From Anthoceros angustus (taxonomy: Eukaryota; Plantae; Anthocerotophyta), in NCBI GenBank assembly GCA_010909165.1, contig VJWM01000003.1, positions 186,001 through 250,000 of the forward strand: DNA of 64,000 bases. Reading direction: 5' to 3'. Numbering within the stretch: position 1 is the stretch's first letter; every line of letters begins with the position of its first letter. Shown piece by piece: positions 47,436 to 64,000 of the stretch. The notes beneath the pieces are model-generated. The model saw only the letters and a list, made by a program, of their open reading frames with translations, ran no database searches and was not told where the DNA came from. A program made the translations under genes and the position numbers.

Positions 47436-49029
47436 TTGGTAACTATGCAAGTGAGAATAGAGGCATCAAATATTTATTCAATTAGTTATGCATAAATACG
47501 GCTAAATCACCCGAAAAGCATGAATAAGGCCTCGTCCTCCTGCGGTTGAGGGTTGTAGAACACAATTTTGTGTTGCATCCGTCCATCAGTTAACCCCATA
47601 ATGGTCACACAAATCGAATTGCGACTTTTGAGAGGGTAGTTTTTAATGAATTAGTTTTTAAAATATTTTTAAATTACATTTGGGATAGTCTTATCAATAA
47701 TTTTATATAAATAATATTTTTAATCATTAATACATTGAAGAATCAACAAAACCTTAAACCATAGAAACTTTTGTCTTGCTTAGAGTTTCTATCCATTATT
47801 GGTCAGCCTTTTAAAGTATTTTTCGCTAGTCTTTTTAAGAGAATTTAAATACGCATACTGAACATATGCATAACAGCTTTTTCTCCAAAATCATAATTTT
47901 CGTTCCAAAACTCACAAATTTCTTTGAGGTTTTTCAAAAGTTTCTAACATGGTATGAGCATCATTTTTCCATCTTATTTGTGTTACTTTACTTTCCACAT
48001 TTTATTTGGGGAGCTCTTTTTTAGGTCTTTCTTTATTCCTTCTGCATATTTTTTTTTTACATAAAGTTATGTAAAAAAAGAGATGGAAAATCCCATCCAA
48101 CTCAAGATGAAGGGGTGTTCAACCAAGGTGGACTAGCCCCTGTCATCGCCCATGTTGAAACTACCTACCACTCCGAGAATGTCGTGGTCCATATAAGAAA
48201 GGGCCAAACACAAACATGTACTTCGGCACTCAAAAAGAGGTCTGAATCTGCAAAACTAAAACCAAATGTAAACATTGTTTTATCATAAAGTAAAAATGGG
48301 ATCAACTAATATTATTAAAATTTATTAAAATTTTATAATAATTTTCATATTTAAGGCACGAATTTTCAAATAGCCAAGGGTCCAAATGAGCTAAAAATCT
48401 GATGTCCTAGGTATGCCCCTAATGAAATACGTTCCTGCAGGCACGATAAAGCTATTTCTGAATAGAAGGAAACATACCCAATACTGGCAAGCAGCCTGAC
48501 ATTGGACAAATCACTCCTCAAACCAAAGTGCCCCTTATGCCCTTCATGAAGAGAATGAGCTGCTCATTACAATATAATTTTTTAAGCGGGTTAATATACA
48601 AACCAACTTATGGCTAAAGTAAATCCTTTTCCAAGATTCCCGACAGTAACTAAAGCAAGGTTTACCCAACATCAGAGAGCCAACAGTTGGGCATTTGTTG
48701 GCACACTTTGCGATTTTTGGCATAGGACTAAAGTGGCCTGTCCATGCATGGGCCGCAAGGTGCCAGCATGCCGGCGCCTCGATGTGCTGATGAAATCATA
48801 TGAAGACTTCACTATATATCTAGTCATCAAAAATGCGTTATAGCATACACTGTAAGTTTGAAGTGAGTCATGGCTGCGACATGTGCGTGACTTTTACAGG
48901 AAACACCACATCTGATTTAACACAAGGAGTAACCAATCACAGTTTAATCTTGTCCATCATCTATACCTGTATGTGATTAAGGAGGGCATTGAGCAGACAC
49001 ACTGTCCACGACAACATCCACATTTCTAA

Positions 49030-49340
49030 GTCGGGCTATCTTCGGAGGTCTCCGTGAAGTCGTCATTGTCCCACATGGTATGCTCAGAGTCGGAGACGTC
49101 TTCAATATGGACTTCTTTGTTTTGGTCTATTCGCCAGATCGCGTCTACCGTCTGCTGGCCCTCGTCGAGCATCTCTCTTGGGTTCTTGTCTTTCCTTCTT
49201 CTAGTTCCTAATAAAACGACCTGGGCCTATGACACATCTTTCTCATACAAGCTCACCTCCTTCGCCTAAAATTGTGCGGGACCGCGGCGGTGAGGCTCGT
49301 GAGTTAGCTCTTCCTCAGCATTAGGGAGAACTTCATAGCC
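49030..49340 (-). pseudogene. Pseudogenised ORF homologous to the 16116..16367 TE ORF
   Basis: ...AQF*AKEVSLYEKDVS*AQVVLLGTRRRKDKNPREMLDEGQQTVDAIWRIDQNKEVHIEDVSDSEH with two in-frame stops. Confidence 0.7.
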
Positions 49341-49811
49341 ATAGGGCTGCCAAGTCTAGTGTCATGCTCCAATTCACACACAGCCACAACGATGGGGAGG
49401 TAAAGTATACTTTGGAGGTGGCCAACGTTGCATGAGTGTCTGCGTTTGATTCAACACCGTGATTCTTTCCTTATGATCTGCTTCTGCATGGAAACAAACA
49501 GTATACGGCACAAGAGGTTCCCATTTTCAAACGTTCAAATAAGATTAGGTGGGATTGGGGGCGAGGGGGGAGGTGGTGATTCGGTCATAATGACAGCCAT
49601 TAGAAAATAAGGTCACACAACGGATCCTACGGTCTAGGTTGTCAAACCCTAGGGGCAACTAATCATAGGTTTACTAACCTAGGGTTAGTGCAGGTGAGTT
49701 TATTTAATCACGTTTGGTTCAAATCTAGGGTTTAAACATACCGTCTACACCCTCCATGTGCAGACTTGTGAGTTTAGGGTTTTGCCAAGCAAATTCGAGC
49801 TTGTGGACGTG

Positions 49812-49929
49812 GTCTGGGTATGTGCGAGCATCTCTGAACGAGTTTGTGGGTGCAGTCTGGGTGTGTGCGAGCATCTCTGAACGAGTTTGTGGGCGCGGTC
49901 TGGGTGTGTGCGAGAATCTATGAACGAGT
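49812..49929. repeat. 43-bp tandem repeat, ~2.7 copies
   Basis: Unit GTCTGGGT(A/G)TGTGCGAGCATCTCTGAACGAGTTTGTGGG(T/C)GC(A/G). Confidence 0.9.
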
Positions 49930-51203
49930 CTGCTGAGATCAGTCAGTGGGCGAGCGATGTTGGGTGGTCGCCTCATGAGGTGAATTTGAGGTAATCTTAG
50001 TGTGGGAGGAAAATCCCGGGGCGTCCTAGATTCACCCTATAAATCAGCTGAAATAGTAGATAGGATAAATAGCTTAGGATGGTTAAATAGGATAAATACC
50101 CATTTATGATATCACAAGAGAAAAGAAACGCAACTAACCCCAACTAACCCACGTAGAAACTCGAAATCCAATGTCTTGAATAGCGAAAATAAGAAACAGG
50201 TAGTTTAACGAGGGTAGTGTGGCCTTCTTGACCTATACCCTGTATTTGTACCCAATCGCAAAAGCAAACAAGGCTGTCCATTTTCCCGTAAAGCTGAGAC
50301 CCGAACTGACGCAATGTCGTAGCAACATGGTGACGGGAGTCAGATTCAAATTTATCATATTAATATTCTAAATATGTGCCTAAAGACTTGCTCAAAACTT
50401 TACCTACCTTAATTGTATTAGCTAGGGTGCCCGCTCATGTGTTAACCTCCAGTTCCTCCCACGCAATACTGCGTGAAATAATAGATCTAATGACTTGTAG
50501 GCCAACAACAAAAGTAATTCTTTCTTCAACTAAAATCCGCGAACAGCAAACGTGATGTCAAGCACCAAAGGCCGGGCCCGAAGTATCCTCTCAGAGTATG
50601 AAATTGAGAATATGCTTCAGGTCTACTTTGCTTGGTCACAAAACTCCATCTACCTTACCACCCATCACTTATGACAATTGACTTCCGACCAGCCTTTGGC
50701 ACCACGTTAGTTATCCTAGGGGTGAATGAAAGAAATATAGGTTGAACTAAACTCTTTAGTCCTAGATTATCTAGACAAACTGCAACATAATCATATTATA
50801 ATAATTATATACAAAAATATTTTAAAATAACCAAGATTTATATTTATTCGTGCAAGATGGGTCGGAACAAGCTACGGTTGGGGAAATGGTCCCACTACCA
50901 ACATCTCATTAGTTAGGACTAATGAAATAGTATATTAGGGGCACTATCTAGATTAGGGCAGCCTTCATATTAAAGGCCTAAATCTCTAATTTAAGTTATT
51001 AATTAATTAATTAGAATTAAATATCTAATTAATTAATTGGTTGTAAAAGGTTATAATTACTCCAACCAAACATTCTGCCAATGCTTTGTAATCATAATAA
51101 AACACTTCAAGTAATTGTATGATTCTTATGAAGGACAAAGAGGGGCTGCCATCACTTGTAAAGATTGAACATTGAATAGGTTTGGGGAAGGAGCGCGACC
51201 TCA

Positions 51204-51393
51204 ACGAGGTCATTAGTTGTTAAAGTTAAAACCAAAGGACACCGAATCCTGCATTTGCTCCTCAAGGAAAAGGAAGGTTGCGGCAAGACGGTGCTATCAT
51301 ACGAGGTAGCTTATTGTTAAAGTTGAAGCCAAAGGATGTAGAATCTTGCATATGCTCCTCAAGGAAAAGGAATGGGCAAGACGATGCTATCAA
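51204..51393. repeat. ~97-bp imperfect tandem duplication
   Basis: ACGAGGT...TTGTTAAAGTT.AA.CCAAAGGA...TGCTCCTCAAGGAAAAGGAA...GGCAAGACG.TGCTATCA occurs twice. Confidence 0.85.
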
Positions 51394-51420
51394 ACTGTTA
51401 GAAGGCCGCCTAGCAAGGAA

Positions 51421-51537
51421 AACTTTTCCTTAAAATTAGCAACTCCAAATATATTTATCTTAATTCTCTTGTGCTGATAAACTTTTCCTTAAAATTAGCA
51501 ACTCCAAATATATTTATCTTAATTCTCTTGTGCTGAT
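51421..51537. repeat. 59-bp tandem duplication
   Basis: AACTTTTCCTTAAAATTAGCAACTCCAAATATATTTATCTTAATTCTCTTGTGCTGAT x2. Confidence 0.95.
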
Positions 51538-51759
51538 GGTTGTTATCCGCCACTCCAAATATGTCTATTTGCCATGATACCCCTCGTATGTTTCACTCCA
51601 ATTATATCTAATTTTCATACTTTTTCTAAACATACTTAAGGAAAGCTCAGACTATATCCTAAATTCCTATTTACCATAATTCCCGTAATCGGTTGCTTCT
51701 TTTGCCGATACATTGTCTCCTTGTCAGCTGCGTTTTGATCGGTTAAGTCTGCTTGCATA

Positions 51760-52030
51760 CAACAAAGTAATCCTCGATTAGAGGCTTTTTGCAACGATCC
51801 TCAACAAAGTAAAGCAATCTGATTAGAGGCTTTCTGCAACAATCCTCAACAAAGTAAAGCAATCCTTGATTAGAGGCTTTTTGCAACGATCCTCAACAAA
51901 GTAAAGTAATCCTTGATTAGAGGCTTTTTGCAACTATCCTCAATAAAGTAAAATAATCCTTGATTAGAAGCTTTTTGCAAATTTCCTCAACAAAGTAAGC
52001 CTTGATTAGAGGCTCTTTGCAAAGATCCTC
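51760..52030. repeat. ~47-bp minisatellite, 6 copies
   Basis: Consensus CAACAAAGTAAAGCAATCCTTGATTAGAGGCTTTTTGCAACGATCCT. Confidence 0.95.
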
Positions 52031-52758
52031 AGCCCTTAAAAAGCTTATCATAGACTTATACTCGGCCGCTTGACATCCCGAAGAATTTAGTAGCTCAGGT
52101 GGGTTAATCTTGGAGGTGGGTTAATCTTGGCCTAAAGTTAGAACCCTATGTCAGTAGGAGTAGATACGGGCCTACAAGACCGCGGCTTCTTTCTTACCGC
52201 TCGGCTGACCTCGCCCGTTTCGTGTACAATTTCTGCTTAGGAAATTAAACTTCTTTACTTTAGACCCAAACTCCTCACAACACTGACCTAAATTATAGCC
52301 TTGATAGATGGTTCTAGTCACCGTGGGCAAATGTAGAATGTAGGGTACTGGAGCTACCATATAAGGAGACGAAGAACTCTATTGTAGTCCACTTGGACGA
52401 TCCTTAGCGTTTCTTTCACGTCCCGTAGTTACAAGGTACAGGTGGGAGTTGAAGGGTCTGGACCAGTTGGCAACTGAATTTGCATATGTAGTCCATAACT
52501 ATGTTATTTACATCATATCAATACCTAGCGAACTCCAGCATCAGGCAGGTTCCTGGCTCGTCGCCGAGTACAGACAACTCGGAACTCCTAATCCCGAATA
52601 CTTGGCAGCTGCTTTCACATAGGTGATTAATAACATAATTATTTAGTGCTCTCCAGCATCAGATAGGTTCATAACGTTGTCACCCAAGTACAGATCACTT
52701 CATGCAAACGATTTGCTAAAAACAAGTCAAGAATGCCCTTCGACATGCCCAGAGCTCC

Positions 52759-55700
52759 TCAATCGTCATCAGTCAAATCGATGACCTCAGGAATGCTGGT
52801 GGCAGAAGAATTCCCACCAGCTGCGGTACGGATTGGCCCCCCAGCCGCAGGAGCACTTGGGCCTCTAGGTGACTGTGCACCCCACTGTTCGCCTTCCCCA
52901 AGGAACCTGGCTGGAATGTTAACATACGCACTTCTGTTAGAGCGGCCAAGCAGTACCTCAGTAGTTGCTGCAAGAGCAGAATTTGGGGAAGCTGAAATAG
53001 ACGGTGCTGAAGGGCTTCTTGTCCCGACGACTAGGCCTGCTGGCTGATTTGGAAGTCCCGAAGATGTTCTTGCAGCATGAGTTGCGGGTCCCGAGGCAGT
53101 CAGCGTCCTCCAGCTTCCAGGGGCTTGACTGGGATGCGCCACTTGGGGTGGCACAGACGATACCCCAGCTGGTGCCACCGTCCGGGTTCCCGAAACAACG
53201 TTTCTTGAAGCACAGTTGCCCAAAAATTGCAGATTCTGCCCAGAGAATGGTGACAGGCTCTCCTGTGGCTGACCTATTCGTAGAGGCAGGTTCTGGGTTC
53301 TCGACCGCGGCACAGATTGCACTGGCTGCGACGTGGGAGAGCCCTGTGGTCGTACAAGTCTGCCGTGCTGCAGTGGATTGGCCTACGGTGACAATATTAT
53401 CCACCTCAGACTTCACCAACTGAGAATTCCGTTACCAGTTTCTGCAAGGCAAGGTCCAGAGGGGCGTACCTGCGTCACAGTTGGCGTAAGGCCAGGCATA
53501 GAGCTTGGAATCCCTGATACCCCTGCGTGGCCAGGGGATGCCGTGTTTGTTATGATGGCCGGGATAAGGGTTGATGTCATGACTGGTCCAGTACCTGCCG
53601 ACAATGAAGACATGTGTCATATTTTGCACCCTCTAGGCTGACCACCTGAAAGCAAAATAGCAACCATGGAAAGGCCCGCGTAGAGATACCGAAGGAAATC
53701 CTTCCATCCTCAGGAGCAAGGGCTATGGCTGCGGGACGGGGCCTCGGATGCGAAGGTGGAACACCAACTTGCCGATCGGCAGGAGACCCATTTTGAGATT
53801 GGCCACAAGCTCGTATCTCTGCTAATTGTGCTGCACCCAAAATAAGGAATCATCAAGCCTTGCCTAAAACGCTGCACCAGAAACTCACCAATAGATGCAT
53901 CCAAGGACGCACCTGCCCTTCTCTGTGCAGACTGTGCTGACTGCTGCTCCATAAGCATCTTCCCCCGCAGCATGTCCGCGAGCTCTCTATTCATATCTAC
54001 CTTCGACATAGCGTCCTTCATCTTGTCAATCTTCCTGTTCGATCTCGCATTGTGATCTTCTATCATCTTATCATACTTGGTCTTCAAAAGAGCGGCCTCC
54101 CTTAGGTAAGACTGCCGCAGTGCAGCTTCCTGCACGACCCGAAAGACGTGTCCATTAAGACATGCCAGTTCTGGACGTCGAAACACATGTGGCAGGAATT
54201 GTCAGCAGAGTACAAGCCCTTCAAGTTTACCTGTACCGTTCCTTCAACCTCTTCATCAACCATCTTCTTCTTCAGCCTGGCTTCCTCATGGGAAAGAGGG
54301 TCTGGTGTTGTTCGCATCACTTGGGCTATGGTAGATGCAGGTGTCGCAGTAGCTTGGCGCGGCATAGGCAACATAATTGAAGGCGCGGCACCGGAAGCAA
54401 GAGCAGCTCTGGTGCTCGTGTTTAGGGCTGGAAAAGACAGCGTCGGGACCACACGTCTGCTTGTTGCCATGGCGCTCACTTGTGGGATTGCTGAGGTGTC
54501 TCCATGTACCGACGCGCTGCTTGCAGGCTGACCCCCACCACCAACTCCGTACAACACGGGCTGAGCATGGCTGGTGATCGTTCCCAACGGGGCAGCACGA
54601 GGCAGCTCCGCAGCGGATCGCAACGCCATCGGGGAGCTCTGATGTTGTGGCAACCGTGGAGCCTGAGTCGGATTACTTGCTGCACCGGCCATCACAGAGC
54701 CTGAAGGAGATTGCATGGCGCCTCCGACACTCCTAACCGCAGAAGATACGCCAGTGTTGCCGTTTTGTGCCCCAGCGCCGGATGATTGCATATGGCTCAC
54801 CCAGCTGATCCTCGAGCTCTGGCCATGACCTGTACCTGCTTCTCCTCGCTGAGTGACTGCAGGGCTGCTGGAGCCTGAGTTCTGCCCACGAAGCAGTCCT
54901 GCAACAAAACTCATCGACTGCACCCCTGATCTCCCTTGGTGAGGTGAAGAAGCTCCAGGACTTACCTGCGCAGATGAGGCCTGGCTGTTCGCTACTTGGT
55001 GTGTTGCCAGGGGAGGAAGGCCTAGAAGACTCGGCTCTGCCTGCCGTGCTGAGCTGAAAATGGATCGCTGGAGGCCTTGCACATGTGGCAACAGAGACTG
55101 TTGGACTGGGGCTGGTTGCCTGTGGACGTCAGGACGGACAATCGGCGTAGATCGTTGAGCTGCCCATCCGTTCTGCCGGAGATGTTGAAACTCTTGTTGG
55201 GCCTGTGCCAATGCATGCGCATGGGATAGTTCCTGGAGTGCCTGCTGTGAAGCGTGCTGGGCCTGCGGATGTGGCTGTTGAAACTGAAGCGACCCAAGCT
55301 GACCACGCTGTTGCTGCACCTGCTGGCCAAGCTGTTGCTGCCCCTGCAGGCCACGCTGTTGCTGCCCCTGCTGACCACGCTGTTGCTGCCCCTGCTGACC
55401 ACGCTGTTGCTGCCCCTGCTGACCACGCTGTTGCTGCCCCTGCTGACCAACCTGTTGCTGTCCCTGCTGGCCAAGCTGATGCTGTTGCCCCTGCTGTGGC
55501 TGGTGTCTCTGCTGCTGCTGCCCCTGCTGGCCAAGCTGTTGCTGTTGCCCCTGCTGTGGCTGGTGCCTCTGCGAATGACCCTGCTGCCACTGGTGGTGCC
55601 AATGCTGCTGCCCCTGCTGCGTCTGCTGTTGAACTTGTTCACCTACTTGCTGAGACTGCTGCCCCAGGAACGCCGGTTGGGTGGATGCATGTTGGGCCTG

Positions 55701-58700
55701 CCCCGACATATGGGTCTGTGAATGTTGCCCTTGGGTGTGGCCTTCAGAATTAGATTGATCGGCCCAAACGTGTAGCTGAGATTCCAAGGGGGCCTGCGAT
55801 AGAAGTTGTTGGGCCAGAGTCTGAGCTTGCTGCACATAGACCATCTGATTAGGGTGCAAACCAGCCTGCAATTGCCTTTGTTGGGTCTGAGCCAATTGCT
55901 GGGCCTCAGCCATTTGCTGCACCTGTGACAAGGCCTGGTGTTGCTGGGTCTGCACACAACCTTGGGACTGCACGAAGGCACGTCGTTGATGAGCATGAGC
56001 CTGCTGATGGTACGCCTGCTGACGGTCAGCCTGAACCTGGAGTTGTGCCTGCCAAAGACCTTCTGTCCGATGACCAGTATTTAGAGTTAGACTCTGAGAT
56101 TGCTGGTGCTGTGCCTGCTGCACAAGCCTAGCCTGCAACTCCTCGCGAACCTGCACCTGGCGAGCCCGATGGTCCTGCTGCGTGTCCTGCTGAGCCTGGT
56201 GACGAGTTGGTGAGTGCACTGTCTGAACCTGGACTTGAAAAGTTGATGCCTGGTGGAAACGAGCCTCAGCCTGCATCTGCTGGGTCGAAGCCACAAACTG
56301 ACCTGGAGTGTGCACTTGCACACGTCGCGCCTGGTCGGGTAACTGTCCCTGACACTCACACTGAGGCCCACGTGTCTGTGAGGCTTGGAGAAGGGTGTGC
56401 ACCTCTGCCAGCTCCGGTCTTTGAATCTGAGACTGGACATTTGCTCTAGGCTGTGGCTGCAAGATGTTCTGCTGTTGCCGAAGCTCAGCCACTGAGGTAA
56501 CACTCACTCCAACTGGTCCAGCATCTTGAGAAGCTGAGGGGCTACGACTTGCAGCACTCCCAGGATTCAAACCTGAAAGAGAACTAGACTGTAGACCAGT
56601 CTCTGCGGCTTGTGTTGGAGACGGAGGCAACAGTGCGAGAGGCCTTATCTTAGACCTGAGGTCGTTACGGGCAGCTTTCTGTCTTGCTAGTAGTTTGTGC
56701 CTCTCCTCCCTCTCACATTTTGTGAACTGGGAAAGTTCACAATCATACCCCTGCATCAAGATCTTCTTGTAAGATTCCCTGTGCAACTTATTAGGTAGTT
56801 TGTTGACTTCTTCCAAAGCTTCTTGATAATAGGCATCTAACTTGTTCCTTGCGTCTTGAACAGAATCTTGGAATCGCTTGTCCTCCTTTGTCTGGAGATC
56901 TATCAACTGCGTAACAGCCATTTCCTGCTTCTCAGGGGTTGCCAATTGAATTCCTTCTAGTTGGCATGGAGGACCCATAGACATTACTGCCAGCCATTCA
57001 AGTGGGCGAAGTCTCCGAAAAGGTTCTTGCCGTACTCCGCCCAGAATCTGAGTCCCCACTGGGGCAGCCTCTACAGGATGCTTATTCGTCTGGCAAGCAG
57101 GAGACTGGCACGGGGCATCCTCAGCCGTGACAAGTTGTTGACCAAGTGACGGATTTGCTGCTTCCGGCTGTTGCACCTGACTACACCCTACACAGTCGTT
57201 GGCACCCGAGTGACTAGCACCTGCTGTTCCCACTGGAGCAGCATCTACAGGATGCGGATTCGTCTGGCAAGAAGAAGGCTGGCAAGAGACAGCCCCAGCC
57301 GTCACAGGTTGTTGCCCAAGTGACAAACTAGCTGCTTCCGGTTGTTGCATCTGACTACACCCTACAGTGTCATAGGCACCCGAGTGACTAACAGCTGCTG
57401 TTGCCTTCTGCAGTTGACCTGTCTGTGCGTCCTGCTGTTCCACATTCAGACTTCCGGATTTTTCTTCAGACTGAATCATGGGGGTGATATTAGATGGCTC
57501 ACCAGGTGGACGACCTACCTGTCCCTCTTCCTCCTGCACATCAAACTTACTGCTCAGATAATGTATAGCGCAGACTTCCAGGCCAGGTACAATTGCTACC
57601 GTAGTCTAACAGAACAAGCCACAAGATTATAGAAATCTTTCATCAGACTGCGCAAACCCAAAAACACTGATAGTGGGAGAAGGTCCAAAGAAGAGAATAC
57701 CCAACATGTTGTACAACAAAGGCATTCGACCGTACAAGGGTACCACCACAGGAGTTCGCCACAGGCAAACAACACAAAATTCAAACGCGTGAGAGTGGGT
57801 GACCAGTACCTGCAAATGCCCAGACATCTCCTTCTGCTGCGGTTCGCTACCAGGAATCTGTTTTGCGTCCACAGCTGTACTTGATGATAGCAGCCCTTCT
57901 ACTGCAGCCCCGCAGTTCAGCCCCTCTCCATTACCTTCACCCTCTAGCGGATGCCCTTCCTGGCTTACCTCGATCGGCTCAGGATGAACCGTGTGTGGCA
58001 TTGAATTTCCCTCAGGCCTGACGACCAACGTGCCATGCACCACATGGTCCAGGTGAACGCTCATGTTCCTTTTCTTTTGTCCATCACCACCGTCATCCCC
58101 GACGGCTGGTAATTGACCTATCGAAGCCAACGTATCATCCCTGCACTGAACTGACTTCCTGACCATGGGCATCTTCCCAGTTCTTTGCCATTCGACATAT
58201 TCATCCTTCAACAGGACTGACCAGAATTTCTTTGCAGGCTCAATATCCTGTGTGAGAGGATCTTCCTGATGCAGGCCATACATAATTGACTGTTGACAGA
58301 CCTCGCCTTCTACTGCCCTGTTTGTCAAGATACACTTTTGCAACTCATGTTCAATTTCGTCTTCCACATGTATTTCTCTATTTTCTGCCAGAAGCAGACA
58401 AACTTTCTCTGCTGTATAAGCTATTCTGTGCTCTCTAATGAGAGAAAGATTGCCCTTCAAGATCTCAAACAACTCCCTAGCTCCCCATCTCAAAATGTGT
58501 TGGCAGAGCTTGGCACTGATTGGCTTTGTAGCAGCCACAAGCCTTTCTCTGACCGGCTTTCCCCTGACAGCTGCAAGCATCCCCTCCTCCACACTCAACC
58601 GTGTGTAAAGCCTGAATACTGCCAACTTTTTTGACTGGAGGGCGCTCTGTAATGATGTTGCAGCATCAAAAGAGGTTAAACCGGCTTGAAATATGATACC

Positions 58701-61700
58701 AATGTCCACATTTGTGAGGTGTATAACCTTGCCGCACATCGAGGCCGCAAGAAGAACAGCAAAGCAGCCCGATTCAAGTTCATTGAAACGCTGGACAGCA
58801 GCCCGATTGTCATGACAGGCAAGTGGTTTGTTAACCAGCTCGAAGGAGTCAGGCCCAAACCGCAGTCGCATATAATCCTCCAAAATTCTCATCACAGCCT
58901 GTGTAGAATTCACAAGTTAACTAAAACAAAGGATGATACAGGCAAAGCCACAATGCACCAGACTAAGTGATTCAACAAACAGAGAACTGCCCCTCAAACA
59001 ACCTTGGATGAAACCATAATCACTACTTTGCGGCGCTTTGCTTTAAGATTCATAAGCATCATGTCTAGCAGCTGAAGCTTGCCGCTAGCTTGTATGGTAT
59101 CCATCAAAAGCGATTCCTCCACCACATCTTTTCCATCCACTCTAGATGCATTTGCAGCAGAGGGGTGGGCCGAGCACTGTGAATGGACATCACATGGAAA
59201 CACGATATCAGAATCTTGGAACTAAATTTCCCGGCTCAACTGCAGCTGCTTTCCCATTCCTCAGAGACAAATGGATATACATGACAAAAGATGTGAACGA
59301 ACCCGAGATAGAGACAAATGAATCAAGACACCATGCATCCACAATCCCGAGTAGGCGATCAAATGCACGTAAAACCCCTTACAGTCAGAAGCACCTACCA
59401 GGTGAAGTTCAGTCACAATATCTTTAAATGTTGAGATTTTTTCTCCTTGTATTCGGCCATCTAGCAGTGTCAAGTAGTTCTTCAACAATGTCTCACAGTA
59501 CTGCTCCACCTGCTGGTTACTCATTTCAACCGGAACCCAGTGCTCCACCAACTGAAAGTCTGAAGAACATAACTTCTCGGATGGAGATACAATGAACTCA
59601 CTTAATAATTTCAACAAAAAATCCCTTTGCTGTTTGTCATCCAGATCTGAACACCGATGATGACAACTACTTGCCTCTGCATGCTGCAGAAAGCTCACTA
59701 TCTGCAACAGATCCTCCACTTCCTTCTGCGCACATTGCAAGAGCAATCAACTGATGAGTATGCTGCCTTCAGGTTGTATGCTTCAGACACGATGCTGCCT
59801 AGCAGACTACAACCAGGTACAACTTATCGACCCAGTATGTTGAAAACATGTCTGCACGGTTTGATCTGAAGGGGGACCTTAAGCGGCTCATGGGAAAAGA
59901 GGAGCCGAAAGTCTGTTCGGAACAGACGAAAAGAGTCCTCTGCATTTGCACCTTTCACCATTCTGTAGCCTTCATCAGCCAACAATGCCTCCCAGCTGAT
60001 GTCCCTTAGATATGAATCCTACACACAATTGTGGCCATGAGAGAGCAATGTAACTTTCATCGAAGGTAACCTGACTCGTGGACCAAGGGAAACACATCAC
60101 AAAAAAACTTCTACACACATTTTCGGAAACACAGTTCAGATGATAGAAAAGATTCTGTACCACACAAGCGATCTCAAATGTTGTGAAGACAATCTGACGT
60201 TTAGAACCTCCACCAACATAGTTGAACTCGTAGCGTTGAATAACCTCTCTAGCCAACTGGCTTCCTGTGTAGGTTACTGCATATGCTTCAGGTGCAATCC
60301 GCAATAGTTCTTTCTCCCAAGCAGGTACAGCCTTGGATGGCAAGACAATTAGAACAGGCTTGGCATTCGGGCATGCTTGGAGAAGCGACAAAACAAACGT
60401 AAGAGCCGTTCTTTCCTGAGAGGTCCAAAAAAATAAGGCATCACATCAGATTAAAAGAACTAACACCCTGTCCTCAGAAGACCACACACTATCATCACAA
60501 GCCAGAAGTTGCAATGTCGAGCACCTACAAACCTTGCAGGCATCTTGAGACAGTAAGCAGTTGGACTTCAAATTCCAGCGTGCCATAAGTTTTTCTAGCA
60601 CCTCTACTTGCTCGTAATGCCACCGTACCCCATCCCATTCTGGCTGTACAGGAAGCCTTTCAATTGGCCCAAGCCCCTTTTCAACCTGATCACAACACAG
60701 CATTAAGCTAGGAACGGAATGCAAACCAAATCAACACAACACTATACCTCATCTTGCCTTCCACCAGTGGGAGTTACCTTGTTGAACCTTAGTGCAAGGT
60801 CCTCTCCAATTTTATTTGCTAACACACCAGTATCGCTTGGTTCCCAAGTGCAACAGTCATATCCAAGACCTTTCCATTTCACCAGCCATTGGCCAGCACC
60901 GCCCCCACCCAAACCACAGACTCTCTCGTGTCTATGACTGGCCCCCCACGGTTCCTTGTGTGCAAGAAGCCGTTCTGGAACAACCCAGTCTTCATTCCAG
61001 TTGGGGCTCTATTCCAAGAGTATCATAAACACTTCAGCAGTACTTCCCAGCACTTGTTGCCCTCAAATAGAAGCTAGCTATACATCAAAACTAGTGAGGC
61101 TACTCAGTTATACACACCATTACAGGAAAGAAACGCTGTTGAGTGATACCTTGCCCTGTTCTGCTTTCCTCTTGTACGAGGAAAGCTTCTTGGGAGCTAG
61201 TTTGATGAGCTCAGCCTCTTGCACCCAGGTGTTATAGACATGGGCATAACCACTCCACTTCACAAAATATTCCTTGGTGTCACATACCAGAACCTCAACA
61301 GCAGCAGCACTCAGGTTTTCCTTTGAGCCATGCGTCTCACCATTAACTGCATTCAAGGAAGACTTTCAGATATTCCACAACCCATTTTGCAATTCCAGAA
61401 CTAAAACACAGCAAAAGATCAACCACTAACACAAAAAAAATTGTCAATCCCTGAGAAACTCAAATACACGAATGGCTCGACAACTAACACACTAACAGAT
61501 GTCAATCCATATGGAACTCAAATACAGAACTAGCTCAACCACTCAGACACTATTAACACTCGTCAATCCATCCAGAACTACAAACACATCACATCCCAGA
61601 GTTCACAACAGCAGGTTTAGCACAAACATGCTCACCCGAAACTGCTGCTGCTGCAATTTGAGATTTTGGATCTATGACTGACAGCGACCTAGCCTCCCTG

Positions 61701-64000
61701 ACCCTCCATATAGACTCCACTTCGACACCATCAAATATGTGCGCCAACAGCCTCCTCTGCTGACATTGAGGACAGTACCAATTACCTACAGGTTTCTCAG
61801 CCACCGGGGGTACAGCACAACCCAAGTGGTATGTCGTTTTGCAGCCCTTGCAGCCACAACATCTGCAAAAAGCACATGACATCACCATAGTTAAGAACCC
61901 ACACTAGCAAACATACTTCTTAGAAAAAGCGAGCATTTATGCTCAGCAAAGTTCTTGGCAAGGAGAAAGTTCATGGCAAGGAAAGAAAATTGCCAATGGG
62001 TTTCAACATACAGGAGATCACCACGCAGCCCGCACTTCTCACAGATATCGTTGTGCTCATCCACCGAGCAGAGATCCTCTGTCTCCCCAACATTCGGACC
62101 AGGACTTGAACTGGTTCCTTTTGCCTTCACTGTATCTGCATCAGTACACATTCCGGTAGCATCCACAGCCTCTAGAACTGCAGGCGTTGCAACTTCAGGA
62201 GCTTGCATGATCCGTGTGTCTTTGCAAACATCCAAGGAGCCTAACTTTGCTACTCCTTCAACGCCATTCTGAGCAGGAGAATCTTCCCGTTGTGAAGAAA
62301 CAGGTAGGCTGGAACCTGTGGGGGCACCGTTAGCTCCAGTCTCCAATAAGACAATGTTCTTATTTCTACCTCGCAACCCTTCACCTGGACTCAGTGAACC
62401 CTTTATCTGAGAGTGTGACCTCTTCTTTCCACCGGTTTGGATTGAAGGAAATTCACTATCACATAGCCTGTCATCAGGGGATCCTGCAACTCCAGCTTCC
62501 ATTCTTCTTTCAATGTCCAGGTTATGGCTTGCTCCCTGGTGCGGCTCCATGGTTGAAGGAGATGAAGATGGGCCCCCTCCATCAGCTCCAGCTTCAGACC
62601 CAAGCAAGCTAATCTGTCGGGGCGGGCCTGCAAGAGATCCAGATAAGCTAGTGCCTGTTCCCATTGCTGAACTTGGAGGTGGCCCTGCTGCCAGAGCTTG
62701 CACCTCCAGAGTCTGAACTTCTTCCGCCTTAGCCAGATGGTGGGAGGAACTCATAAATGCAGGATCTGAGCTTTGTGACGATCCCTTCACATGCGGAGCG
62801 TTCTTCTCAAGAGAGTCCTGAAGAGGATCAGCCACAAGCAGCTTTCTTCTATCTGACCGGTCACAAACATCCTTCTGAACTGATTCAAAACACGAAGTCT
62901 TCTGATGGTACATACTAGCAAGAGAGACAGCCTCCCTGTGCCCCTTGCTGCCATCCCCATCCTTGAAGCGTTCATAACCACTGACGAACAGGCACAAGCA
63001 GCTGGGAAGGGCCAAGACCAATCCAGACAAACCTTTGGTAAGAAATTCAAAACGAAAAGGCATTGCTAACACAATAGAGTGCAGAAAACAAGCTCATACT
63101 TTGCACACAAACTCCCTTCGCGGGCCCAGGGGCAATGGCAGTACCTTCTCTGCACGGCTTCATAATGATCTGATGCTCGCTTGAACCCAAAGAACTTCAC
63201 AATTTTTAGTTTTGGACCTTCTCCTTTTCTCTCAAGGAGGTCGAGCGGGACATCCGGTGGGATACACGCACGAGACATCAGAATTCCAGGCCACCACAAC
63301 TCCTCTGTTATCTGCAGAAAGACACCCGAGTCAAGTGGCAGCGAGACGCTGTACAACAGAATGTAAGCCACGCAAGGGGCAACAGGTACCTTAGCCCAGA
63401 CAACTGCACCACTTGATAACTTGCCATCCCTTTCTTTGGAAGTGATGCTTTCATCCTGCTTGCCGTGCAGCACCTTGGCTGAACGGTCAATAGGACAGAC
63501 TATTCTTGGAGCAAACCCCGGGTTTGGATCTCCTGTTGTGACCGAATCACTGCCTTGAATAACAGACTGCATGTCTTTGGTCTTTCTCACCCTCGGGTGC
63601 GGCTGGTTGGGCAAATGCCGAGCCCTTGTATAACTTTCGGACCTACCCTGAGCCTCAGCTGCATGTTCCTCCGTCTCATCACCGACATGCCTACCCCCAG
63701 CTGACCCTTCATTCCCCACCGAACATTCCACCAGATCCTCTGCACAGAGGCGCCCACTTGTCCAAGACGAAGACGAGCTTCTCTCCACACTCAAGTCTTT
63801 GTGGAGCTCCTTAGCCTCTGCCCTTCCACATTGCTTGGAATCCACATCTTCCGTGTCCTTCGGTGAGGCATCCTCCCCTCCAGACAACCACAGCCACCTC
63901 CTGCCTGCTCTACAACCGGTTGGCGTCATGCTAGACCCAACGGGTGTAGGGGACTCCTCCAGTGCACCTCTCCTTCCCTGAGGACTCTGTGAAGGAGAAG
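52759..64000 (-). CDS. MOM1: MOM1-like CHD3-derived chromatin silencing factor: PWWP - PHD - chromo - chromo - degenerate SNF2 - coiled coil - Q-rich - CMM2 - SIM; 5' end beyond window
   Basis: PHD (CEKCGLRGDLL..CKGCKTTYHLGCAVPP...WYCPQC), chromodomains (EYFVKWSGYAHVYNTW; WLVKWKGLGYDCCTWE), SNF2 remnants (SGKLQLLDMML; VFRLYTRLSVEE; ILRWGARELF; FWSVLL), CMM2-like DPLSHEEARLKK...VDMNRELADML, and C-terminal VIDLTDDD. Confidence 0.85.

Follow-up and report, generated by a model that had tools for sequence, protein, structure and literature searches.

A PWWP-like module probably forms the N-terminal end of a CHD3-type pseudo-ATPase gene in Anthoceros angustus

A PWWP-like module upstream of a CHD-type gene

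A 64,000-nucleotide (nt) stretch of the Anthoceros angustus genome (contig VJWM01000003.1, positions 186,001 to 250,000, here called the window) carries exons for a PHD finger, tandem chromodomains and an SNF2-like ATPase on its minus strand, preceded by exons that resemble the first half of a PWWP domain. Most probably a single gene contains both these PWWP-like exons and those for the PHD finger, the tandem chromodomains and the SNF2-like ATPase; the probability that the PWWP-like exons form the N-terminal module of a long CHD subfamily II gene on the minus strand is put at about 0.72. The predicted protein would run from the PWWP-like domain through a linker of about 300 residues, a PHD finger, tandem chromodomains and a degenerate SNF2 ATPase to a long Gln-rich tail. 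The gene would be related to the PKR1/CHR4 and MOM clades of plants, branching deeply and evolving fast, and may have retained an accessory PWWP domain, as have CHR4-type proteins of non-flowering plants and one pseudo-ATPase paralogue of Diphasiastrum. The layout is real and is not unique: it is a variant of a known family, and can already be seen in public, unnamed proteins from a liverwort, a clubmoss and a yew. All coordinates below refer to the window, and all features described lie on its minus strand.

Evidence for a single gene

A sequence-only reading of this stretch had proposed that the PWWP domain is fused to the PHD, chromodomain and ATPase gene. This proposal is well supported by three observations: the PHD finger begins within the linker exon, the gap between the PWWP-like exons and the linker is short, and five homologues contain both domains in one polypeptide.

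The linker exon (62012..62980) is part of a 1179-nt open frame, corresponding to an open reading frame (ORF) of 393 amino acids (aa). It possibly starts with the end of the PWWP domain (a weak helix match, GYERF..REAVSLAS), continues as a long low-complexity linker, and ends with the first half of the PHD finger (..CEKCGLRGDLL). In tblastn searches, positions 62067-62011 were aligned with residues 1206-1224 of the Diphasiastrum protein KAJ7544078.1 (P0004), beside its Pfam PHD match at 1214-1257, and with residues 949-972 of the Marchantia protein P0180 and 675-697 of the Logan protein P0003. The rest of the finger (CCGCKGCKTTYHLGC..WYCPQC, 61636..61862) follows after an intron of 149 nt with GT..AG borders (61863..62011); it matched Pfam PHD with an E value of 2.8e-4 and was 52-56% identical to P0004, Marchantia P0180 and Riccia P0012. 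Residues 1224 and 1225 of P0004 are contiguous across this intron, and the residues of Marchantia P0180 and Logan P0003 are likewise contiguous. Linker and PHD finger are one gene, because the finger is encoded in part by the linker ORF.

Downstream of the PHD finger, two chromodomain exons (61120-61356 and 60742-60912; Pfam Chromo, E 8.9e-10 and 1.9e-7) are followed by the SNF2-like ATPase exons (57627..60724), in which Pfam SNF2-rel_dom was matched weakly (E 0.004-0.06). The order expected for CHD subfamily II, i.e. PHD, two chromodomains and SNF2-rel_dom on successive exons and then the ATPase C-lobe, was thus found with Pfam and by comparison with relatives.

Upstream of the linker, fewer than 250 nt separate its coding sequence from the second PWWP-like exon (exon B, 63145..63311), leaving no room for the end of one gene and the promoter of another. 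It is quite improbable, for this reason among others, that the PWWP-like exons form a separate upstream gene which ends at the stop codon at 63066-63068 and that a CHD3-like gene starts at an ATG in the linker (63063 or 62913). The unspliced PWWP frame does reach that stop, the linker frame does contain ATG codons, and the orthologous region of Marchantia was formerly annotated as two genes, but a 3' end, a promoter and a 5' untranslated region would all need to fit into the short gap. Furthermore, no separate small PWWP protein was found among proteins of 171-544 aa in a word search with the PWWP ORF, the five homologues hold both domains in one chain and in the same order, and splicing from the strong donor at 63145 to either of two acceptors, at 62981 or 62915, preserves the frame.

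The annotation history of the MOM-type locus of Marchantia polymorpha (P0179-P0184; Mp_1g07380 / Mp_1g07390) is of interest in this context. Older annotations give two genes, for a PHD protein of 1201 aa and a MOM1-domain protein of 1604 aa, and a newer one gives a single protein of 3394 aa, 'Mpsnf1.4', which suggests that long genes of this kind are easily mis-split.

The PWWP-like exons

The first PWWP-like exon (exon A, 63390..63998) ends with ..GAVVWAK, which corresponds to strand beta1 of the PWWP fold. Its frame contains no stop up to 63998, the end of the window; an ATG at 63929 is a possible start, and the 5' extent of the gene may lie beyond the window. Over its 200 residues the Pfam scan detected no other domain and no zf-CW. 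Intron 1 (63312..63389; 78 nt, GT..pyrimidine tract..CAG) was read base by base. Lists of ORFs read through it because its length is a multiple of three and it is free of stops in frame, so that the unspliced PWWP frame is open for 310 codons, from 63998 to the stop at 63066-63068. In composition (T 0.35, A 0.10) it resembles the PHD intron (T 0.40) and is unlike the exons (T 0.20-0.27, A 0.26-0.28). Exon B then encodes ITEEL-WWPG...KIVKFFG, i.e. strands beta2 and beta3 and the beginning of the beta3-beta4 insert, and ends with a strong phase-2 donor (AAG/GTAC, 63145).

After removal of intron 1, the beta1 motif VW.K, the WWP motif and the hydrophobic-FFG strand beta3 stand in the correct order and at the correct spacing. 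Five residues then lie between VWAK and WWPG, a gap identical to that in four homologues, whose cores include VWAK-LSNGL-WWPG, VWGK-RGGRY-WWPA and VWAR-RVGGA-WWPA. In a search of the whole window, translated into 2,988 six-frame pieces, with a family model built from five CHD3-linked PWWP domains, the PWWP ORF ranked first (14.2 bits, E 0.004; runner-up 9.8 bits), and exon B alone scored 16.6 bits. With Pfam PWWP (PF00855) the E values were 0.19 for the entire 287-aa ORF, 0.064 for exon B alone and 0.013 (16.4 bits) for a 93-aa read-through piece. Apart from one weak match at chance level, PWWP was the only Pfam family found on these pieces. The read-through piece had no match when its sequence was searched against the PDB.

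Scores of this size (14-17 bits, Pfam E 0.013-0.19) are all modest, as would be expected if non-coding sequence, or coding sequence of another kind, resembled the domain by chance. It is very improbable, however, that chance would produce the best of 2,988 pieces exactly where relatives have the domain, together with a consensus intron whose removal restores the exact spacing of the family, in a frame that is open for 310 codons. On these grounds the first half of the domain, beta1 to beta3, is taken as real.

The junction between exon B and the linker

The best-looking join, and the favoured candidate junction, uses the donor at 63145 and an acceptor at 62981, giving a putative intron 2 of 164 nt (62981..63144) with a T-rich, A-poor composition and a pyrimidine tract followed by CAG at 62983-62981. 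The region from about 63120 to 62981 is intron-like in this sense, and the sequence turns purine-rich at 62980. The 164-nt join leads in frame into the 393-aa ORF and places an aromatic residue nine positions past the beta4 position, as in the relatives; the head of the linker exon shows a weak AV..A helix match, to which the family model gave only 0.9 bits. An acceptor at 62915, corresponding to an intron of 230 nt, is also in frame.

Two other models for this region were considered and rejected. The initial junction model contained a 51-nt micro-exon at 63032-62982 (FVWIGLGPSQLLVPV), for which there was no model support and whose composition (T 0.39, A 0.06) is intron-like. A second half of the domain reading W....MPF, as originally suggested, is unlikely: the intron ending at 63066 that this join requires would be only 41-47 nt long, compared with 78 and 149 nt elsewhere in the gene, and the join falls in the intron-like region. 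The accompanying claim that nothing forces a stop or a start between the PWWP-like exons and the 393-aa ORF was found to hold, since several GT-AG joins preserve the frame. All plausible junction models carry the frame on into the linker, and the case for a fusion is the same whichever of them is right.

The ATPase

The SNF2 ATPase looks catalytically dead, judged from its predicted motifs. Motif II reads DEGY in the window and DEGH in P0039, an active relative from Diphasiastrum with which it was aligned by tblastn. In the C-lobe, encoded by an exon of 428 aa, the arginine-finger stretch of motif VI (RAHRIGQ in P0039) is replaced and shortened, with the arginines deleted. Neither the DExH motif II nor the motif VI arginine fingers of active SNF2 remodelers were therefore found; Walker A falls at an exon junction. 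The GKT and RxxRxGQ motifs are likewise missing from KAJ7544078 and from Marchantia Mpsnf1.4. The earlier suggestion that the protein acts without remodelling is consistent with this degenerate ATPase.

Homologues with the same domain order

The 428-aa C-lobe exon was searched against 1.84 billion representative sequences, yielding 271 relatives, of which the best 150 were examined for architecture. All relatives examined were CHD3-type, and in five of these 150 a significant Pfam PWWP match lay upstream of PHD, chromodomain and SNF2 matches. These were Diphasiastrum complanatum KAJ7528419.1 (PWWP at 51-123, E 1.6e-11), Taxus chinensis KAH9288566.1 (P0087; E 1.7e-15), Riccia sorocarpa KAL3687398.1 (E 3.9e-15), the unnamed, transcript-derived Logan protein P0021 (E 8e-10), which is sister to a Ceratopteris sequence, and Diphasiastrum KAJ7544078.1, a hypothetical protein of 2330 aa with zf-CW, PWWP (796-882), PHD (1214-1257) and a weak SNF2 match. 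When the PWWP regions of P0039 and P0087 were used in word searches, only the queries themselves came back, and the spread of the architecture is read from the 150 best representatives. The model of the Taxus protein begins with a copia-type reverse-transcriptase fragment at residues 25-110 (RVT_2, E 7.9e-17), which probably stems from a neighbouring retroelement that the annotation joined to the gene.

The architecture had been thought to be without precedent in described proteins of this kind. This no longer stands, as public proteins with this architecture and significant Pfam PWWP matches come from a liverwort, a gymnosperm and, as two paralogues, a lycophyte. Relatives combining PWWP, PHD, chromodomain and SNF2 regions, for which a search had been suggested, do exist in these five cases, but none of them is among the 86 CMM1-bearing (PF25029) proteins in the tree, all of which have no PWWP match. 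Even weak PWWP matches upstream of the PHD finger were absent from the proteins of Marchantia, Riccia fluitans and Selaginella and from other MOM-type proteins.

Four of the five proteins (KAJ7528419, KAH9288566, KAL3687398 and P0021) have fully conserved ATPases and stand at the base of a CHR4/PKR1 clade with 100% support, in which none of the 21 angiosperm members has a PWWP domain. The Ceratopteris CHR4-type models begin inside the chromodomain region, and are uninformative on PWWP. The window sequence falls outside this clade. Together with KAJ7544078 it forms long, deep branches between the CHR4/PKR1 and MOM clades, for which no clade is claimed. KAJ7544078 is the nearest full-length relative of the window gene, with 31% identity in the C-lobe, the shortest path in the tree and 56% identity in the PHD finger.

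Points against the fusion and the possibility of a relic

Several results weigh against a PWWP domain as the N-terminal module of this gene. The PF00855 scores obtained on unspliced pieces (12.7, 14.2 and 16.4 bits) are below the gathering score of 25.6 bits, and pairwise comparisons of the PWWP pieces of the window with the PWWP domains of the homologues were not individually significant. The C-terminal half of the domain (beta4-beta5 and the helices) was detected by no model, and the domain may be decayed. The best relative in the C-lobe search, P0001, was only 44% identical, so that the species and its close kin are missing from the protein databases searched; placement of the window sequence in the tree is weak (support 49, with a long-branch warning and an end branch of 1.32); and the MOM-type liverwort proteins Marchantia Mpsnf1.4 and Riccia fluitans KAL2650122 have no PWWP domain.

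Only the first half of a PWWP domain is recognisable in the window. A complete fold after removal of the 78-nt intron had been proposed; the part of this proposal that stands is the first half, with VVWAK, ITEEL-WWPG and KIVKFFG at the spacing of the family, and not the second. The exons could accordingly be a decayed relic of an ancestral PWWP domain, still translated, of which only the first three strands are left and which no longer forms a working domain. Besides the sub-threshold Pfam scores and the missing second half, this is suggested by an Ala that, under the favoured splice, takes the position of a Trp in two relatives, and by the fast evolution of the whole gene and its degenerate ATPase. 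On the other hand, nothing is missing from the VWAK-x5-WWPG...FFG core and its spacing is correct, and the long open exons indicate that the gene is maintained. The relatives also vary at the same positions: the Taxus protein has Cys in place of the beta4 Trp, and its domain still matches with E 1.7e-15. A relic is considered unlikely on balance.

Possible function of the PWWP-like module

The protein would serve as a multivalent scaffold that binds chromatin, and not as a motor. A chain that combines four chromatin-contact modules with a motor missing key catalytic residues is most likely a binding scaffold, in which the PWWP domain would contribute nucleosome or DNA contact and avidity alongside the PHD and chromodomain readers.

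PWWP domains that read methyl-lysine, such as those of the DNMT3/LEDGF type, have an aromatic cage of three residues, whose positions, by analogy with DNMT3B, we take to be an aromatic residue located three positions ahead of the second Trp, this second Trp, and a further aromatic residue two positions ahead of the Gly of FFG. When the sequences were read at these assumed positions, the first was found to be Glu in the window and G, R, K and G in P0039, P0087, P0004 and P0028, respectively, and the full cage was not found in the window. The proposed role in reading H3K36me is therefore doubtful. As the cage looks incomplete, binding of DNA or nucleosomes, or of another ligand, is favoured over canonical H3K36me3 reading. 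The further proposals, that the protein targets SUMO-dependent silencing and takes the place of the separate reader subunits of the MOM1 complex, are speculative.

Comparison with named systems

KAJ7544078 resembles the predicted protein most closely. Both have a PWWP or PWWP-like domain, a spacer (about 330 residues in KAJ7544078), a PHD finger, tandem chromodomains and a weak SNF2 match, which in KAJ7544078 has neither GKT nor RxxRxGQ, and both lack the PF25029 MOM1 domain. The PWWP domain of KAJ7544078 passes the Pfam threshold (26.0 bits), unlike the pieces from the window. KAJ7544078 further differs in a DUF1087 match and in a zf-CW domain (residues 694-737) about 60 residues upstream of its PWWP; neither was seen in the window, which ends 200 residues upstream of its own PWWP. 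A zf-CW exon of the window gene may lie beyond position 64000.

The PWWP-bearing CHD3 proteins of the CHR4/PKR1 type (KAJ7528419.1, KAL3687398.1 and KAH9288566.1) share with the window gene the N-terminal PWWP with the core VW[AG][KR]-x5-WWP[AG], followed by PHD, tandem chromodomains and SNF2. They differ in having conserved ATPases (SNF2 255-269 bits; GKT, DEGH and RAHRIGQ in P0039) and DUF1087, with a Myb/SANT-like match in two of them, and belong to a separate, well-supported clade. In KAJ7528419 the PHD finger directly follows the PWWP domain, unlike in the window. As Pfam detected no DUF1087 match and only a weak SNF2 match in the window, the conserved ATPase and DUF1087 that characterize PKR1/CHR4 proteins were not found.

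Members of the MOM clade (Arabidopsis MOM1, the rice and poplar proteins, Marchantia Mpsnf1.4 and Selaginella MOMa), which make up the majority of the best database matches of the window, share with its gene an origin in CHD subfamily II and a long tail, and those outside the Brassicales also share the PHD finger, chromodomains and degenerate ATPase. MOM proteins have been defined as CHDs with at least CMM1 (Pfam PF25029) (PMC9113485). No Pfam match to CMM1/PF25029 was found on the 428-aa and 1145-aa exons, and a model made from five MOM1 domains found nothing on the minus strand from 48000 to 64000. The tail exons had no significant match to any solved chain in the PDB, so that a CMM2 structure, should the bank contain one, was not matched either; CMM2 is a short motif, and no CMM2 profile was used. 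The label 'MOM1-like', given in the sequence-only reading, is in view of these results a loose one. Judged by its predicted domains, the most fitting name for the gene is that of a CHD3-subfamily pseudo-ATPase with kinship to PKR1 and MOM, rather than of a demonstrated MOM1 orthologue.

The combination of a PWWP domain with an SNF2-family chromatin protein of the green lineage is also known from volvocine algae, where it was found only in Chlamydomonas and Volvox and was described as a volvocine-specific gain (Alvarez-Venegas and Avramova 2012, PMC3457860). The same survey stated that no land-plant SNF2 member has a PWWP domain (PMC3457860), which is contradicted by the present protein records of Riccia, Diphasiastrum and Taxus.

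Animal PWWP2A/B are reported to work with NuRD-type HDAC complexes (PMC6143588). The likeness to the window gene is functional, in that a PWWP reader is brought to repressive machinery of the CHD3/4 family. The animal PWWP is a separate subunit that acts in trans and excludes the remodelling module, and there is no architectural homology.

Implications for the PKR1/MOM lineage

The combination of a PWWP domain with a CHD3-type protein occurs in several non-flowering land plants, and probably also in the genome studied here. In a 2022 survey of CHD remodelers, PWWP is absent from the main text and is not listed among the plant accessory domains (PMC9113485), and the literature that was searched contained no description of the PWWP plus PHD/chromodomain/SNF2 layout in land plants. 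The step itself is modest, a domain added to a known family and here only half recognisable, and its interest lies mainly in the evolution of the PKR1/MOM lineage.

These findings raise the question whether the PKR1/MOM lineage began with a built-in PWWP domain and later passed chromatin reading to partner subunits, as in Arabidopsis. A tentative scenario, for which we claim little confidence, is that the PKR1/CHR4 and MOM superclade of land plants had PWWP as an accessory domain from its ancestor onward. The CHR4-type proteins of the liverwort, lycophyte, fern-like and gymnosperm groups would have retained it, and angiosperms and the CMM1-bearing MOM proteins would have lost it. The window gene and KAJ7544078 might then represent a third, unnamed lineage of PWWP-bearing pseudo-ATPases, single-chain reader scaffolds intermediate between a remodeler and a MOM1-type silencer. 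A motor-dead, reader-rich relative of CHD3 could in this way show how MOM1-type silencers originated.

The C-terminal tail

The tail is encoded by an exon of 1145 aa (54102..57539), which contains a coiled-coil-like stretch and Gln-rich repeats and in which no Pfam domain was detected. The repeats form a long run of Gln-rich, imperfectly repeated units of the QQGQQQQRG type at about 55000-55650, with the coiled-coil-like stretch upstream of them.

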